From: Pelomyxa schiedti
Lineage: Eukaryota; Protista; Evosea
Assembly (NCBI GenBank): GCA_020536535.1
Contig: JAHLWZ010000076.1
Location: 26,102 to 90,101 of the forward strand
Direction: 5' to 3'
Length of the DNA: 64,000 nt
The notes beneath the pieces were generated by a model. The model had not been told where the DNA came from and searched no databases. It saw nothing but the letters and a program-made list of their open reading frames with translations. The translations under genes were made by a program, and so were the position numbers. Within the stretch, counting starts at the first letter, position 1. Each line of letters begins with the position of its first letter. This document shows positions 5,493-64,000 of this stretch, piece after piece.

Positions 5493-6338
5493 ATGGCGAA
5501 CCCGAGGACAGTGATTTGTGGTGTTTGTTGTGTGGCGGCTTTGGTGTGGTGGAGGGCCGTCCTTTCTCATCCTAGAATGTTTATTTTCTTGTGAGTTCGT
5601 GCTCCTTTGCTTTTTTTTTCCTCTCTTAACGGGCCTTTTTTTTCCTTCTCCTCTTGGCCAACAAAACTAGGACCAACTGGGCCAATGCCCTTGCAGCTTG
5701 TTATTTTCTCAGCAGTGTTGCAGCAGACTTGGCTCTTGGGCGTGACTACAGGGAAAAAAGGGGGTGGTTGTTTGGCTTCCAAGGTGCGTTCCTTCGCTTC
5801 GTCACCTCTTTGAACCTTACTGTGCTCCTGATGTTTTGGGTGTGGCTCAAACTCAAATTGAAATTAAGATAGAGGAGGATACACTACCCTTTTCCTTCGC
5901 ATAACTTACAAATAACAACACCCAGGGGCTATTCTTTATCAATCCTCTGAATGTCATGTCTCCAAGGTCAACGTATCCTCTGACTCTCAATGTACTTCAA
6001 CATGTAATTTGCCCGGTTATGCTACTTGTTGAGTGTCTGTACCACCGCATTCCCAGAGCTTTACTTTCCATCATCACTGATTTTGTAATTGCAGTACGAT
6101 TTCCTTTTCTGTCACTTCCTTTATGGCTAATACCGATCATTTTGTCCAGGTTGCTGCAGCAGGGCTTTACCTTGGATACATTGCCTGGCTGCACTATTCT
6201 CACGGTTTCAAATGGCCTTACAGAGTCATTGAAGATGTTGGATTACCCACTATGTTTTTTATTGGCTGTTCCACGATCGCACTTATCAGTCTGTGCCTTA
6301 GGCTTCTGCCACAATCCAAAAAACCCAAAAAGAACTAG
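5493..6338 (+). CDS. FAR-17a/AIG1/ADTRP-family multipass membrane Thr/His hydrolase (3 introns)
   Basis: Spliced MFIFL|TNW gives the family FLTNW motif (catalytic Thr); NVLQHV (catalytic His); C-terminal GFKWPYRVI motif; several TM helices. Confidence 0.8.
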
Positions 6339-6435
6339 ACAACACTTCTCTTGTCATTATCAACCTGTACAACAAAAAAGAGAAAAACAAAGAGGTTTTG
6401 AGCTCTATTACGATCGAATGTGGTGACACAGAGAA

Positions 6436-8052
6436 TTACTCAGTGGGTTCCAAAAATTCTGGTGCCTCGTTGTCAGAATCAGCTTCCTCAGTTGACTTGG
6501 ACCGGCCAGAGGAATTCTCATCGGGAATGCAGTGTGTTACTGATTGCATGTCAAGGGTGTCACTCTTTGTTTCTGAATCAACGTCGTTAAGTTGTTCAGT
6601 TTGCTGTTTGAGTGGTGGAGAAGCCGTAGGTGTCACGGCAACGGGGCTGTGGTCCCCACTGTGCTTGCTTGCGTGGCCGCCGTTCATCGAACAGCATAGA
6701 TTATCCGGTGATGGTGTCTTTGGAGGGTGGAGCTGTGGGTAATGTGCCACCAACTCTTCCGCTTGGAGGTGCTGATGCTGGTCGGATGATGCGGGCTGCT
6801 GCGTGTGCAACGAATTCATATTGAGTTGCAGTGGTGGGGATGGAGCTGTTGGGGGAGGCGAGAGGCACATCAAAAGCTGCGGCTGCTGAGGTTGTGTTAA
6901 TATTCCATGCGGTGAATGCGGAGATAACAACTGCTTCTGTTGTGATGGCTGCTGCGATTGTATTTGTTGTTGTTGCTGGGCTATCTGCAAGTGCTGCATA
7001 GAAGAATTTGCAAAGAATACACCGGCTTCGTCGTCCAGTCCCCCAGAACTTACAGTGGCAGCCTGCTGACTCTGCTGAATCTGCTGCTGGGCATGCAAGT
7101 GCATCAATTGCTGCTGAAGGGCTATCATTTGCTGGTGCTGTTGCTGCTCCTGCTTGTGGTGGTATTGCTGTTGCTGCTCCTGTTTTTGTTGCTGCTGCTG
7201 CGAGTGACCTTGTGCGTGATGGTTGTTGGCGTTGGTATTGTTAATACCAATACTACTGCTACTGCTTCCATTGCTAACGATTATATTACTGTTGTTACCT
7301 CCGTTGCTGGTGCTGCTGATGCTGTTGTTAGAGACGGGAGATAGTAACACATCACGGGCGGCGCAATTGAGCCTCGCAAGCTGGCCAAAGTCTGTGGTCA
7401 CGAGGCTAATTTTGGCAACGAACTCAGAAAGGAGCGACCTAAGCACCCGGTTTTCTTCCCTAAGCGAGGCCACCTCCGCCCGCAAAATCCCACAATCCGG
7501 GTCTACAACTCCGCCTCCCATTCCCGTCCCTGTTCCTGTTCCTGTTCCCGCTCCCGCTCCCGCTCCGCTCGAGGTCGCGCACCCGCAACCGGACCCCGGC
7601 GGCATCGCCGAGGAAACGCCGGAGCCCAGCGGGGCGTTGCCGAGGCCGCCGCTTCCCACAATCGAGGATGGCTGCTGTTGGTGGATGTTGTTGCTGGCCA
7701 GGGCGTGGCTGCCGTTGCCTTGTTGTTGCTGTTGCTGTTGCGGTTGTTGTAGGGGCGGGGACAGACTTATGGGAGGATGGAAGACGATGTTCGATGTTGA
7801 GGTAGCAGTTGCGTAGTTTACCGGGCCGTTGGGGTTCAACGCCAATGGGGGCACTAATGGTGGTGGGTGCTTGGTGGGCTGTTGGTATTGCTGTTGTGGT
7901 GGTGGTTGTTGTTGTTGCTGGTGGGATGAAGGCGGGGAGCCGACGATGGTGGGGTGCTGCTGTAGTTGTTGTTGTTGCTGGAGTTGCAGCTGTTGCTGTT
8001 GCAAATGAGCCTGGAAGTGCTGCAGGTGTTGCTGAAATGTATTGTCCATCAT
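6436..8052 (-). CDS. Intronless polyQ/low-complexity protein with a short leucine-zipper-like coiled coil
   Basis: 565-codon open frame; likely start MMDNTFQQH (8052), alternative ATG at 8133; polyQ, N/S and G-rich tracts; heptad CGILRAEVASLREENRVLRSLLSEF. Confidence 0.75.
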   Translation of the reverse strand: MMDNTFQQHLQHFQAHLQQQQLQLQQQQQLQQHPTIVGSPPSSHQQQQQPPPQQQYQQPTKHPPPLVPPLALNPNGPVNYATATSTSNIVFHPPISLSPPLQQPQQQQQQQGNGSHALASNNIHQQQPSSIVGSGGLGNAPLGSGVSSAMPPGSGCGCATSSGAGAGAGTGTGTGTGMGGGVVDPDCGILRAEVASLREENRVLRSLLSEFVAKISLVTTDFGQLARLNCAARDVLLSPVSNNSISSTSNGGNNSNIIVSNGSSSSSIGINNTNANNHHAQGHSQQQQQKQEQQQQYHHKQEQQQHQQMIALQQQLMHLHAQQQIQQSQQAATVSSGGLDDEAGVFFANSSMQHLQIAQQQQQIQSQQPSQQKQLLSPHSPHGILTQPQQPQLLMCLSPPPTAPSPPLQLNMNSLHTQQPASSDQHQHLQAEELVAHYPQLHPPKTPSPDNLCCSMNGGHASKHSGDHSPVAVTPTASPPLKQQTEQLNDVDSETKSDTLDMQSVTHCIPDENSSGRSKSTEEADSDNEAPEFLEPTE

Positions 8053-20635: not shown

Positions 20636-21047
20636 GGTGGGTGGGTGATGTTGGTGGGCCGCGGCTGGGTTTGTGGTTGTGGGTTTGTTGTTGTCTGGCG
20701 GCGCAACTAGGGAGAAGCTGCGTGGTTTCTTGTTTTGGTGGCCAAATATTACGCTGGGTGACCTTTGGGAAAGGAAAAAAAAGCCACCGCGCCTTATCTG
20801 GGACCCGGTGCTTTTCTCAGAAGAACATTTTCGGCTTCGCCAGATTAGAGCTCTTTCTCAGCTGTCTCTAGATGTCATGGACAATGTGAAGATTTGTGAA
20901 AAAAAAGAGGACGACAGAGAAAAAACCAGAAGGAAACAAAGACTCAATGGCGCCATTTGGTGTCAAAAATATACTCTTACGATGCCAAACATAAAAGCTG
21001 GGAGATTTTAGTCAAACAAAGGCAAACAAAGGGAGATCTTAGAGGCA

Positions 21048-22114
21048 ATGTTTAACGGCGACTCTGGCGGGAAGGGGGATGTTGGTGATACTGACGATAT
21101 CTATGCTGTGATACGTGCATCCATGGCTTTCAAAATTCATGCGGCTGCCGCTGCAGCACTGTGTTTGGCATCATTCATTGGTGTGCCTGTGCTGCATAAT
21201 TCTAGTTTAAAGCAGTAGACCTCACTTGCGTTTTACTCACTCGATTCTTTTTCCCGGACAGCTTGGGTGTTTCTAGATTTTTGGTACCAGTCACTGCCAT
21301 GGTACATAAAAATGCCGCATAGTTTGTTCTGATTGGTTAAGGTTCATATTCCCATTTTGGCTGAGCGTGGTTTCCCTGTGTAGCCATTACTTTATATTTC
21401 TGAGACCAACTCGCGACCTTCTAAGTCTTCACTTGGCCTGTTACTTAATCACCAATCTGGTCATTTTCGGTACAGCTTTGTTTCGCTCTTAGTATCTAAA
21501 CTCTCTGTAGTCCTGTGGCTATCTATCGATCACACTCGCACATATACGTGGTTCTTGTATTCGTTTATTCTGTGGGGAGCCTTATTAGGGGTGCACGCAA
21601 TCGCTGTTATGGTTCTGGAGAATGCTTACCAGTGGGTTTACGCAGACGGTGTAGTCTATGCGGGTACTCCATTCCATCAAGCTTAAGTTGATTCCGATTT
21701 GACTAGGTGTTAACATGTTCTTGTTTCTGATTTGGATGGACACCCGCTGCAAAATTCCCTGGTTCGTCTGGCCTGCCTTGGGAACAGTATTGCCCATGCT
21801 GTACCACTATTCTGTTGTAGCACATGCTTCATGGTTTGCTGTTCACGCAATGGCCTTTGCTGACATCAATGTGATGCTGTTCCTTACTTGGATTATTGTC
21901 GGAATGGGTTTCCCGGTATGAAAGGGCGAACAAGTTCCCGTCACCAACTAATGTGTCACAGTGGTTCGCGTTCCCTCTCGTAGCATGGACCGGAGTTCTT
22001 ATTGTGCACTACATCATGTGGCCGCCTCCCTCCCGCATTGCCCTCTCTGACGCCTTTGGTATCCAACCATCTCCCTCTTTACCGTCTCACCCCCTGACAG
22101 CCTACCAAACGTGA
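21048..22114 (+). CDS. Polytopic membrane protein with four tandem 2TM-domain-like repeats
   Basis: Spliced product repeats the pattern H......N..LF..W.......PWF..P...W...L..HY four times (e.g. WFAVHAMAFADINVMLFLTWIIVGMGFP|WFAFPLVAWTGVLIVHY). The 3' end is uncertain (22114, or 22213 if a further intron is used). Confidence 0.7.
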
Positions 22115-59342: not shown

Positions 59343-59793
59343 CTTTTTGTGGTGTATGATAAGTACTGGCTTCAAGTCAAGACTTCAATGGCTTCCCCTC
59401 CCAATTCCTTTCTTCATTGCCCTAGCTAATCCAAGCCAAACAAACAAAAAAAAACAAAAAAACAGGAAACAAGAAAAAAAAATGAAAAAATAAAAAACCA
59501 AAAAAAAAAGGGGAAAAACAAAAAAAAAAAAAAAACCACACCTGCTTTCCTTTGCGCAGCACCATCAGATCAGATCTGTTCTGATGGCAAAATTGGACGA
59601 AAAAATCAAAATAACAACAAAAGGGAAGAAAAAAACGGCAGTTTGGAGCGGGTACGGATTCAAATCGGCGCGACACCGCCAACATCAAGTTGGACCACGT
59701 TATCTAACATCGAAAAGGCGGTGAGGCAGTCCCATAATTGATTGTTGTGGTATTAGCGACAGGCAAATAGTGTGTACTGACAGGAGAAAAAAA

Positions 59794-60895
59794 ATGGCCG
59801 CCACTACGATGCCCCCTGCCAGTAATGTATTTCAATTTAAGTTAGTGCTTCTTGGCGAATCGGCCGTCGGAAAATCAGTGCGTATTTCACTTTTCAATTT
59901 GAAAACATACAAAAAAAAAACAAGCATAATAAAAATATACCGTTGTTGTTTGGATTGTGGACTCACGTTTCTATTCTCAGAGTTTGGTGTTACGTTTTGT
60001 TAAAGGGCAGTTCCTCGACTACCAGGAAAGTACTATTGGTGGTAGGAGCTCCCATTCCTTTTCCTCCCTCTTTCTCCTTTACTTAGATGCACAAAGCGGC
60101 CTTTTTAACCCAAACTGTATGCGTTAATGAAACAACTGTCAAGTTTGAAATTTGGGTATTCTCTCATTTCTGGCTCAGTTTTACCTAGTAAAACTCATTT
60201 TAGGATACAGCTGGCCAGGAGAGATATCATGCCCTAGCTCCTATGTAAAATTGCTTCTCGCAGTATTTCACCCTCAAATTTATTTAGGTATTATCGCGGT
60301 GCACAAGCAGCAATTGTAGTTTAGTATGTCTTTTTATATTTTTCCCAACCTCACGAACTTTCCAAAAATCCAGTGACATCACAAATGCGGTACTTGCACC
60401 ATATGCATGAAGTTTGGTTCTTATGAAATATGTTGTAGGAATCCTTTGCAAAAGCCAAGTTGTGGGTGCAGGAACTTCAGCGCCAAGGCAGCCCGAACAT
60501 TGTAATCAGTTTGGCTGGGAATAAATTTGATCTTGCCGCCAGACGTAAAGTTGACACAGAAGTAAGTGGATGTTCACCTTTTAAATACAATTCACCTGGA
60601 ACAGCTAGCACAGCAGTACGCTGATGAAAATGGTATTCTGTTCATGGAGGTTAACTTCCCTTTGTTGGACTCCTTCCTTGTTGACTTAATTCCAGACAAG
60701 TGCGAAGAGCAATACCAACGTAAACGAACTTTTTGTTGCCATAGGTAATTTTCTTCTGTCTCCCAAACATGAACTAACAAACGAGAAGCAAAGAAATTGC
60801 CCAAGACACCCCCCATAAGACAAGACAAAATATCAGCACTCACTCTCCAGAATACCCCCATAGACCCCAAGAGAAAAAAGTGCTGTTCATCCTGA
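59794..60895 (+). CDS. RAB5: Rab5 GTPase (9 introns)
   Basis: [14 protein letters not shown]|[20 protein letters not shown]|AAFLTQTV, W|[14 protein letters not shown]|[12 protein letters not shown]|DIT, NKFD, E|TSAK; C-terminal CCSS*. Confidence 0.96.
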
Positions 60896-61074
60896 CAAAA
60901 ACCACCACCATTACACCTTGTGCAATAACAGTAATTTCTTGGTTAACCCTCTCCTGAAGTTTTTCATTGAAATACGCGTAACAAATACCAACTTAACCAA
61001 CTTCGTTAATACGGAAAAGAATAAAGTCGTTTCCACGTAAAACCAAAACAAATTGGAACAACAACCGCAGACGC

Positions 61075-62478
61075 ATGGGTACTGGATCCTCACAGCCGGC
61101 AACTCCTGTCGCATCAACCGAGCCACAACCCAGTGACGTCACACCGCTGGCACCAAGGCAACTGAGCGCCGCAGAGCAGCAGCGCCTCGCGCAAGAGGTT
61201 GCTAGACTGAGGGACCAATTGGGCCCGGAGAACTACCGCCCGGGCAGGCTCAGGAACGTACCCAACGTGCCGTCGACTCTGAACAGGGTACGAATCGCCA
61301 TTGTGGGACAGACCGGCTCGGGCAAGAGCTGCCTCGTCAGCACGACCCACCGAGCCGTCTCGTTGCCGTACGTAGCCGACGGCGACCAGGAGCCGACGTG
61401 GTACCCGGCGGTCGGCGAGAGCAGCAGCGGCGGCGAGGGCACGGTGCTCACCGAGGAGGTACTTATGGGACCCCGCGCCTCCGCGTCGTCGTATTCCTCG
61501 TCGTACCTCGACACCCGCGGGTTCTTCTCCAACAACCCCCTCGAGTTCGCCGAGTTCGTCGCCATCGTCGACGGCCGCCTGCGCCACGGCGACACGGCCG
61601 ACCGCGGCGACGTCGGCACGCCGCTGCCGTGCTTCCCGACGGGGCTGCCGCCGTCGTCGTGGTCCGCCGACGACATCCTGGACCGCGGCGTCACGTGCGA
61701 GGCGCCGCTGGCCGACCGCGTGCACGGCGTCATCGTGGTGGTCAAGGCCAACGACCCGCGGCTGGCCTCCGGGACCTACGACGGCGCGCTGGAGCGCCCG
61801 CGCCGCGTGCTCGGCGGCCTCGGCATCGCGCCGGTGTGCGTCGTCACGCACGAGGACACCCTGAGGACGCAGGCGGAGCGCGACCGCGCCCTGCACCTGG
61901 CGTCGGCCTGCACCGGGAGCTCCGTCGAGGACACCTACTTGATAACAAACTACACGGCTAGGATGAGGGCCAGGTCCGTTCTCACGGACTGGGAGGTACT
62001 GCGAAAATTTGTTGTCAAGCACTTGCTTCCCGCTAAAATGACAAAAAAAAACCAATTATCCAATCTTCTTACTTGCTGTAGGCTCTCACCGTGCTGCATA
62101 AGGCTTTGGAAATGGCGGAGCGGCATATTGATATCTACCTCAGTAGACAGGCGGCATCCATGTTCCCGTACCAATTAGCCACCAAGGAGGCCAGGCCACA
62201 GCCACCAACAGGAACCAAGGGCACTGTTACCGTGCACAGAGGGGACCAGAAGGCAAACTACCGCTTGACGGACGCCACAACACTGGCTGACTTATTTACA
62301 AATGCAAAAAATAGATGGAAGGACCTTACAGGCCAGAATTTCTTTGGTGATCAGGTTCCACTCTCTTTCCTCTTTTTTCTTCTTCAGTCCATTTGTTAAT
62401 ACCACACTACAGGAAGGTGCTGAGTATCCCATGTTTGAGCTGGTTCTCAATTTACCCCGGGACATTTATCTGTACTAA
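61075..62478 (+). CDS. IFI44/IFI44L-like P-loop GTPase with N-myristoylation motif and C-terminal ubiquitin-like domain (paralog A; 2 introns)
   Basis: MGTGSS; RIAIVGQTGSGKS; DTRG; PLADRVHGVIVVV; GIAPVCVVTHED; TYLITNY; introns at 61996-62081 and 62355-62412; beta-grasp-like C-terminus VTVHRGDQKANYRLTDATTLADLF...FFGDQ|EGAEYP. Confidence 0.7.
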
Positions 62479-62504
62479 AAGAGCATTATTTCCATAAATT
62501 TTTT

Positions 62505-64000
62505 TTAGTATTTTCCAAGTAGGAAGGAAGTGGTTCCTACAACAGCAACTTTATCACTGGGGTCTAGTTCGGCATCCTCCTAATTTCTCCTGGTGAATTC
62601 AAAAGGAAGGAAAGGAAAAGTAAGAAATTATGTACCATATCAGACAGGTAGTATGCAGGCCCAGTTGGAGGTTGTACTAATTCAAACCATTTGAGTGCCT
62701 GCTGAAGTACATCCCGTACACAAGAAGATGCTTGTATTTGTACGGGTATCTCCTTCCCTTGGAAGGTTACTTTCACTGTGAGTTGAACTGCTGGTTGTGG
62801 GGGATTTGGCTGGGGAGGTAGTGAGGGGGGATTATTGTTGCATTGGGGAGCAACTGGGGAAATTGTGTTTGTGGGAGGGTCTGTGCTGGGGCTCGTACTA
62901 GTACTAATCCTGGGTGGTGTGCTGTTTTCTGATGACATTTCGGCATCTGGTTGTTCCTTGGTCTGGATTCCGTTGGAATGAGGCGCAGTAGTTAGTGTCA
63001 CACTATTCCTTCTCACTAAGGTCTCTTCACACTCACGAATAACAGTTTGCAGAATCTGTAGTGGGGGCAGGCCCATTAGTTTTTTTTAAGTTGGAATATA
63101 TGAAAACCTGTAATGCACGCAATTTTATTTCATTGCCCGGGTTGAAATAGAAACTTGCTTGGATGAGAAATGTGTGATCCATTGTCGCCCCAACTTGCTT
63201 GCTCAACGCTACTTTGGTTGACTCTTTTTTGCTTGCGGTCCAGAGTTTATCTTCATGTGTTCCAACATAAACTGGATTTATTCCGAGCTTGGAGCACCAA
63301 TTTTGAAAAGACTCTAGCGGGTTGAGATCAATATCGAGACAACAGTTAACACAGTATATTGCACCGTCACAGGTAGCAGTTGGGAGCTTTAGTTTCAAAT
63401 AAGTTGGAGATATCAAAGCAAACGGAAAACCTCATCGGACTTGATTTCTGAAATGCCTACATCGGAAGTCAAGAACGTAACCATTCGATATGAACCAAAT
63501 GTGTCGCCGTGTTGCTGAGAAAGGGTACTCCCTTCGAAACTGTGGTGAGTAAGGTAAACGAAACCAAATGAAAGTCCGAATACATAGTAGTAAAAAAGTC
63601 TCGCAATGAACTTTTTCCAGAAACTGGTGCTCCACAAATTGCAATGCGAAGTGTTTTGATACCTTGGGGAATCCCATCTTTGTGAAAGTTGCCAACGTGA
63701 TATCGCTTAAGATTGGAAAGGAGTTGAGGGAAGTCCTCAACTTGCGAAGTAGGTGTAGCCAGAATAGTAGTACCATAGTGTGAGGCAGAGGAGCCTTGAT
63801 TGGGAGAACAGCTCGGGGAGATCTGAGCAAAGATGTCCTTTGTCGCATATCGAGGAAGTGGATTTCCAGTCTTCTTCATCCAGTGAGTTATAGCCTCAAC
63901 GTGACTTGGGTAATAGGTGCTCCCCCAAGAGAGCATTATCCCTTTACTTCCGTCAAGGAGAAGTTTTTCCTCTGGGCCAGAAAATTGTGCCAGTACTTTG
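62505..64000 (-). CDS. Divergent IFI44-like P-loop protein with C-terminal ubiquitin-like domain (paralog B); 5' end probably outside the window
   Basis: LRIAICGAPVSGKSS; DGAIYCVN; LGINPVYVGTHEDKL; VGATMDHTFLI; Ubl LTVKVTFQGKEIPVQIQASSCVRDVLQQALKWF...YLSDM|EDAELDP; four GT-AG introns; the frame is open to the window edge. Confidence 0.65.

Follow-up and report, generated by a model that had tools for sequence, protein, structure and literature searches.

The stretch of DNA analysed here (the window, 64,000 nucleotides) corresponds to positions 26102-90101 of contig C76 of the amoeba Pelomyxa schiedti and runs up to the very end of that contig. Next to this end lie two convergent genes, gene A (61075-62478, plus strand, three exons, 419 aa) and gene B (62505-64000, minus strand, five exons in the window). 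The reading that we favour, with a probability of roughly 0.5, is that they are two divergent paralogues of a family that has expanded in pelomyxids, in which an IFI44-like G domain is followed by a long helix and a ubiquitin-like (Ubl) domain, that the family takes part in ADP-ribosylation-linked signalling and that A and B are partners. An earlier note, made from the letters of this DNA alone, had described the two genes as paralogous IFI44-like GTPase-Ubl genes acting as effector plus regulator in defence.

Two spliced, distantly related genes in tail-to-tail arrangement

The two genes are real and were found at the positions and with the motifs given in the earlier note, and all six introns of A and B were seen as GT..AG joints in contigs of three RNA-seq runs on single cells, all from one study. 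These contigs were assembled from unchallenged cells and give neither transcript ends nor expression levels. Given that all six joints are present, A and B are transcribed and correctly spliced in the same cells, and given that the stop codons are only 26 nt apart (62478 and 62505), the 3' untranslated regions of the two genes must overlap on opposite strands. The three exon translations of gene A, when concatenated, equal protein P0093 (419 aa), which carries the name "E3 ubiquitin-protein ligase TRIM56" in GenBank. Gene B, with introns of 44, 44, 52 and 56 nt (minus strand, read as CT..AC on the plus strand), was handled exon by exon throughout and entered the phylogenetic tree with exon 3 only. 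It is cut at 64000 by the contig end and has two additional 44-nt introns in the G domain. A frameshift or homopolymer error after the P-loop of B was considered and ruled out by the RNA-confirmed 44-nt GT..AG intron at 63540-63583.

Exon-wise BLAST of B against A gave two matches only, one at the P-loop (48% identity over 23 aa) and one at G4/G5 (40% identity over 42 aa, E = 4e-7). Two phase-0 introns are common to the genes (the slash marks the intron), one after the G domain (A ...DWE/, B ...ALQ/) and one inside the C-terminal domain (A ...GDQ/EGAE, B ...SDM/EDAE). Since the similarity is found in just two places and in the common architecture, A and B are old, distant paralogues. The proposed paralogy is thus borne out by the homologous G domains and the two equivalent introns, but the relationship is distant and not close (40-48% over short stretches).

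Fold, motifs and relatives of the G domain

An AlphaFold2 model of gene A, built with an alignment of 50 sequences, had a mean predicted local distance difference test (pLDDT) of 85.3 and a predicted template modelling score of 0.76, and consists of a helix (residues 32-49), the G domain, a long helix (302-334) and a beta-beta-alpha-beta...beta domain (353-419). Prediction from the single sequence of exon 1 gave no usable model (pLDDT 36). When the model was compared by shape with the ESM-Atlas, seven of the ten rows were IFI44 or IFI44-like clusters (template modelling (TM) scores of 0.54-0.77 by row, 257-280 residues aligned). Among solved structures Toc33 was the best match (Z 13.6, 205 residues aligned), followed by GIMAP2/7, septins and generic GTPases (Foldseek), and these matches were weak, with TM scores of 0.25-0.3 by query and identities of 11-16%. 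With Pfam the A and B exons gave only sub-threshold P-loop matches and no AIG1 or Septin match at cut-off, and sequence searches of single exons against Pfam and PDB returned nothing but P-loop noise.

An exhaustive phmmer search of 1.84 billion representative proteins returned 86 relatives of gene A at E <= 0.001, which comprise P. schiedti paralogues, a Mastigella eilhardi transcript, metagenomic proteins and uncharacterised cnidarian, hemichordate and amphioxus "G domain-containing" proteins. The numerous matches of about 255 aa in ENA are coral fragments and not bacterial. The closest non-amoebal sequence relatives are animal proteins with 30-40% identity and E values down to 1e-30. Named vertebrate IFI44 was not found among the named or looked-up matches of phmmer (20 of the 86 were looked up) and of two word-seeded searches, one of which had 34 weak matches outside those listed, and no TLD(c) domain was found by Pfam in A, the B exons or the orthologues. 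For these two reasons we speak of an IFI44-like G domain and not of IFI44 proper: the IFI44-type G domain claimed earlier is retained for gene A at the level of the predicted fold, while membership in IFI44 itself is unproven. As two P. schiedti paralogues are named 'Interferon-induced protein 44' in GenBank, the resemblance is already present in annotation; no paper on it was found.

The residues that are invariant in the family alignments (A1 and A2) are the P-loop, EGT, DTRG, the His in DRxH, THxD and a final NY. Gene A has GQTGSGKS, EGT, DTRG and THED and all other invariant columns of A1 and A2, so that G1-G4 of a TRAFAC-class GTPase are present. Gene B has kept the P-loop (GAPVSGKS) and THED but has lost the invariant Arg, the His and the final NY, and DxxG in its G3 region is not conserved (DTFG/SDVG in the window, ETFG/PCIG in a second copy on contig C2234). 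These losses agree with a pseudo-GTPase. The start MGxxxS was found in 27 of 50 sequences, namely in A, its closest relative P0087 and 25 animal homologues, and a start of the MGxxxS/T type also in protein P0232, described below. This motif fits N-myristoylation, which suggests that the family is membrane-anchored.

Nowhere in the window is the GC content as high as in exon 1 of gene A (69% GC, GC content at third codon positions 0.88, up to 77% per 100 nt). Its surroundings have about 42-46% GC, exons 2-3 of A, gene B and all paralogues 44-49%, and the gene of the orthologue P0087 42%. The exon is not a chimera, given that RNA contigs splice it to the AT-richer exons; for the same reason, and because it has the intron site of the family and its closest relative is the 42%-GC P0087 (41% protein identity), a foreign origin was rejected. 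GC-biased gene conversion is one possible cause. A GC-rich island (up to 68% over 600 nt) was also observed just upstream of the paralogue P0011 (locus L023, about 5900-6600, equal to C927, about 20900-21600), with similar, weaker islands in loci L020 (about 7100) and L021 (about 6500).

A built-in ubiquitin-like domain

The C-terminal beta-grasp or ubiquitin-like domain with a phase-0 intron at the equivalent site in both genes, as claimed in the earlier note, was recovered in the model, in profile matches and in the RNA joints. Residues 353-419 of the gene A model have a pLDDT of about 90 and the expected order of beta-grasp elements. Eleven family members were combined in a profile of this domain (A3), which matched the Ubl domains of ubiquilin-2 (E = 4.1e-5) and PLIC-2 (E = 1e-4), and further ubiquilin-1, ubiquilin-3, ATG8/LGG-2, moesin F1, ISG15 and polyubiquitin, i.e. 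the matches were nearly all Ubl domains; the Pfam models ubiquitin, PB1, DUF2604 and TUG-UBL1 match individual family members. As neither A nor B ends in Gly-Gly, the domain is a built-in, non-conjugatable one. The combination of the G domain with a Ubl domain was seen only in amoebal proteins and two metagenomic proteins, and the animal homologues end in a helical domain.

Gene B continues into a mid domain and the end of a putative NADAR domain

The reading frame of gene B runs off the end of C76, and contig C3776 (717 nt), which overlaps the end of the window at 99% identity, continues it. This contig encodes a domain that we call mid, preceded by the last approximately 30 residues of a putative NADAR domain (PF08719; 19.7 bits, Pfam E 1e-3). 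For comparison, NADAR scored 46.7 bits (cut-off 35.1) in a B-like orthologue described below (locus L024) and 23.7 bits in the B-type gene on contig C571. The first 84 nt of C3776 (locus L017) are the reverse complement (96%) of C2234:451-534, the exon 2 region of B, and C3776:1-84 is probably an inverted chimera from whole-genome amplification; given this chimeric start, the true upstream sequence of B is still unassembled. Contig C4773 was rejected as the missing 5' end of B, because it has a NADAR match but belongs to a different gene. A U-box-like segment upstream of the P-loop of B found no support in the Pfam searches.

The mid domain is about 190 aa long, lies between NADAR and the G domain or the Ubl domain, and has the motifs LLCNFD and ETRLSxNExDxSGIGxGxFYRKLR. 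It is about 50% identical between two amoebae, and mid and Ubl are both well conserved. No sequence match was found for it in Pfam or PDB. Weak leads point to a degenerate G domain (feature score of 0.76 to CENP-M; hhalign against the G domain of the family, E 0.057 with a probability of 1%). Pattern scans of viral contigs and JGI metagenomes with the mid-domain and G-domain profiles found no relatives, a viral structure library gave generic GTPases only, and PADLOC gave only weak LeoA/P-loop matches.

Family members cluster in the genome

Further copies, which the earlier note had proposed to look for, were found in the genome as clustered paralogues, and a second A/B pair was found in a relative. 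Canonical members of the family lie on contigs C76 (A), C277 (P0002), C1057 (two), C571, C927 and C142. P0011 (C927) and its relatives have the architecture G-Ubl-PARP. Contigs C1057 and C571 each have a G-Ubl-PARP gene and, after it, a NADAR-mid-(G)-Ubl gene. In these B-type genes the G domain is decayed, with GKS missing on C571 and the whole G domain on C1057, where the architecture is NADAR-mid-Ubl. Each of the four B-type loci that were examined (C76, with C2234 as the same locus, C1057, C571 and L024) adjoins a canonical GTPase of the family. A more divergent member, about 25% identical to the others by tblastn, was observed at C142:28754-29407 on the minus strand (L026).

The pair is conserved in a second amoeba

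The locus L024 (ENA ERZ21831265, ctg81894l, 410233-431531) is part of a 449-kb metagenome contig with 40% GC and short introns. Its genes are, in order, a P0005-like gene (minus strand), a G-Ubl-PARP gene (minus), a gene for an MGxxxS-mid-Ubl protein, P0232 (minus), an A-like gene, P0087 (plus), and a B-like gene (minus). Of all relatives, P0087 is closest to gene A (41% identity over 359 aa). The B-like gene encodes NADAR and mid domains, a P-loop, THDD and the Ubl domain. The A-like and B-like genes are convergent, with stop codons 5 nt apart, and share the position of the Ubl intron.

In a quick maximum-likelihood tree, A grouped with P0087 (Shimodaira-Hasegawa-like approximate likelihood ratio test, 93) and exon 3 of B with the C2234 copy and the B-like exon of L024 (96), and the B-type group was nearer to the PARP-type genes than to gene A; the tree is unrooted and from a quick search, with long branches, and the B rows cover 22% of the columns. 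The common architecture with NADAR and mid supports the orthology of the B genes independently of the tree. A flank of L024 is 71% identical in nucleotides to C571:34116-34295. The contig comes from a separate, related organism, and normal synteny could explain some of what is conserved. The presence of orthologous convergent genes on an independent amoebal contig agrees with the earlier suggestion of an old pair kept together, and these sequence comparisons support that the two genes already abutted at their stop codons, as an A/B pair, before the two amoebae diverged.

Gene B diverges more strongly than gene A between the two copies

Contig C2234 (L016, C2234:1-1863) is collinear with 62136-64000 of the window at 87% identity and is a second copy or haplotype. 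The B exons are 75-93% identical in nucleotides between the two (exon 2, 75%), two B introns 55-64%, and the last exon of B and the 3' exons of A 96-99%. The haplotype copies of B are 58-87% identical per exon in exons 1-4 and identical in exon 5 (24 codons). The ratio of nonsynonymous to synonymous substitution rates (dN/dS) between haplotypes is 0.5 for B (dS 0.22, dN 0.11) and 0.12 for A. Both haplotype copies of B, like the orthologue, have an undisrupted reading frame, and the two haplotype versions are both transcribed. These data fit a fast, relaxed evolution of B, short of demonstrating positive selection.

Features of the A/B locus and copies of the mid domain (window coordinates unless a locus is named)
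Feature	Position	Strand	Remarks
Gene A exon 1, 307 codons	61075-61995	+	MGxxxS myristoylation-like N-terminus, helix (residues 32-49), whole G domain
Gene A P-loop, GQTGSGKS	61306-61329	+	In exon 1, as are EGT, DTRG and THED
Gene A intron 1, 86 nt, phase 0	61996-62081	+	Spliced in RNA contigs X1-X3; site common to gene B
Gene A exon 2	62082-62354	+	End of the long helix (302-334), linker, start of Ubl from about 62208
Gene A intron 2, 58 nt, phase 0	62355-62412	+	Inside Ubl; same site in B and paralogues
Gene A exon 3	62413-62478	+	Last Ubl strands and stop codon; no C-terminal Gly-Gly
Spacer between stops, 26 nt	62479-62504		42% identity between the two haplotype copies
Gene B exon 5 (last), 24 codons and stop	62505-62579	-	End of Ubl
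Gene B exon 4	62636-63055	-	Post-G helix, Pro/Ser/Thr-rich linker, first part of Ubl (about 62636-62791)
Gene B exon 3	63108-63386	-	Second half of G domain; THED (G4) kept, family-invariant His and final NY lost
Gene B exon 2, switch region	63431-63539	-	EGS(T) kept; no conserved DxxG
Gene B exon 1 in window	63584-64000	-	Cut by contig end; tail of mid (about 63850-64000), linker, P-loop
Gene B P-loop, GAPVSGKS	63610-63633	-	In the first exon present in the window
Mid domain copies	63850-64000; L017:190-717; L024:12425-13006; L020:6068-6460; L021:7449-7850		

The neighbour upstream of gene A (59770-60900, plus strand) is a Rab5-like small GTPase gene, with introns of 43, 46 and 44 nt confirmed by RNA contigs, which ends about 150-180 nt from the start codon of gene A.

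Discussion

In the interpretation that we favour, the family would act in ADP-ribosylation-linked conflict or stress signalling, i.e. in defence or in the control of intracellular microbes. Gene A would encode a membrane-anchored GTP switch, and gene B a nucleotide-binding, catalytically impaired partner that brings an eraser of ADP-ribose, NADAR. The two proteins may associate by G-domain contacts, by Ubl contacts or by both, in the manner of Toc, GIMAP and septin GTPases. Enzymes of the NADAR type free guanine of ADP-ribose and are antitoxins to ADP-ribosyl transferases (PMC11125620), and cnidarian homologues of IFI44 belong to antiviral programmes (PMC13319465). By analogy, the effector plus regulator in defence that the earlier note proposed is plausible.

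Several observations weigh against this interpretation. The physical or regulatory link between A and B, and likewise the role in defence, would follow from analogy. Paralogues cluster by tandem duplication anyway, so that adjacency alone is weak evidence, and P0002 (C277; also named TRIM56 in GenBank), which is A-type, has no B-type neighbour within about 4 kb. The NADAR domain of B itself was seen only as its last approximately 30 residues, on a chimeric contig of 717 nt, and since A is without PARP, a logic of writer and eraser is not directly applicable at the A/B locus. In addition, the sequence searches did not reach vertebrate IFI44 among the matches listed or looked up, and the second amoeba is represented by one metagenome contig of unknown taxonomy. 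A stronger version, in which A and B form a heteromeric module older than the amoebal split, with a myristoylated IFI44-like GTP switch (A) controlling an eraser (B, NADAR-mid-pseudoGTPase-Ubl) as the counterpart of the GTPase-Ubl-PARP writers, is in our view doubtful.

The main alternative, which we regard as possible though somewhat unlikely, is that the adjacency is a by-product of local duplication and inversion in a compact genome and that A and B act independently. It would account for the varied orientations within the family clusters (head-to-head, tandem and convergent), for the solitary P0002 and the merely distant similarity of A and B, and, through plain synteny, for some of the conservation in L024, whose flank is partly syntenic with C571. 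It does not lead one to expect that A-type and B-type genes, each orthologous between amoebae in which the A proteins are only about 41% identical, are still convergent and abutting (26 and 5 nt), nor that every B-type locus examined (4/4) adjoins a canonical GTPase of the family.

A housekeeping membrane or organelle GTPase system like Toc, GIMAP or septin, in which the likeness to IFI44 reflects G-domain ancestry only, appears unlikely. The best folds in PDB are of this kind, A and B are expressed in unchallenged cells and the myristoylation motif suggests membrane association; however, conflict systems typically have fusions of the kind seen here, with PARP, NADAR and, in amphioxus, TIR, the family has expanded in particular lineages and has a patchy distribution (its 86 matches came from 1.84 billion proteins), B evolves fast and the cnidarian IFI44 homologues are genes of antiviral programmes.

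We consider it very improbable that gene B is a decaying relic and future pseudogene, with only A being functional. The loss of the invariant G3, Arg and His residues, the loss of the P-loop or of the entire G domain in other B-type genes and the dN/dS of 0.5 could be taken as decay, but the ratio is below 1, the frame is intact in the haplotype copies and the orthologue, four introns are correctly spliced, and mid and Ubl are well conserved between species. The GenBank product names of P0093 and P0002 would make gene A an E3 ubiquitin ligase of the TRIM56 type, a reading that can practically be dismissed, given that Pfam found no RING, B-box, coiled-coil or other TRIM match and only P-loop matches in these proteins and that the model is a G domain with a beta-grasp domain.

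Comparison with known systems

Few antiviral genes of animals are induced as strongly as IFI44 and IFI44L, and the action of their G domain is poorly understood. Like gene A, these proteins have a G-domain fold with flanking helices, a G4 motif of the THxD type and a GxxGxGKS P-loop. Unlike them, A and B are without TLDc, carry a short N-terminal helix (A) or NADAR and mid (B) in front of the G domain, and end in a Ubl domain. To our knowledge, amoebae have no interferon system. IFI44 and its oyster homologue are defined by TLDc (PMC11682996). The uncharacterised "G domain-containing" proteins of cnidarians, hemichordates and cephalochordates (e.g. Nematostella LOC5503216) share MGxxxS, the helix before the G domain, the G motifs and the helix after it with gene A; they differ from the amoebal proteins in their helical C-terminus, one amphioxus member has TIR, and no fusions with NADAR or PARP were seen in them. 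These findings suggest that G domains of the IFI44-like type also occur outside animals; since vertebrate IFI44 was not reached and the tree is unrooted, an ancient origin and gene transfer are indistinguishable.

Toc, GIMAP and septin GTPases work by homodimers or heterodimers of their G domains. Toc33/Toc159, GIMAP (AIG1) and septins were the best matches of A among solved structures, but with the low TM scores and identities given above. Two further systems serve purely as functional analogies, without any claim of homology for the first. The GKS and GMS proteins of the IRG family are likewise pairs of a canonical GTPase and an altered relative, and the change in B is in G3 and not in the P-loop lysine. 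In the DarT-NADAR toxin-antitoxin system a transferase is paired with NADAR, as the PARP-type transferase of the family stands beside a NADAR gene on C1057 and C571, whereas A, the partner of B, is without a transferase.

In the amoebal family an IFI44-like G domain is combined with domains of known chemistry, namely Ubl, PARP and NADAR, where PARP attaches ADP-ribose and NADAR takes it off. This raises the hypotheses of a GTP-gated control of ADP-ribosylation, of heterodimers between active and degenerate G domains and of membrane anchoring by myristoylation. P. schiedti is an anaerobic archamoeba with intracellular bacteria and archaea (PMC8887013, PMC10579272), and the control of microbes is therefore a natural setting for these ideas. 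If the module is true, the G domain of animal IFI44 may come from a regulator gated by GTP, or share its function with one, that acted on ADP-ribosylation and ubiquitin-like signalling during cell-autonomous defence or symbiont control.

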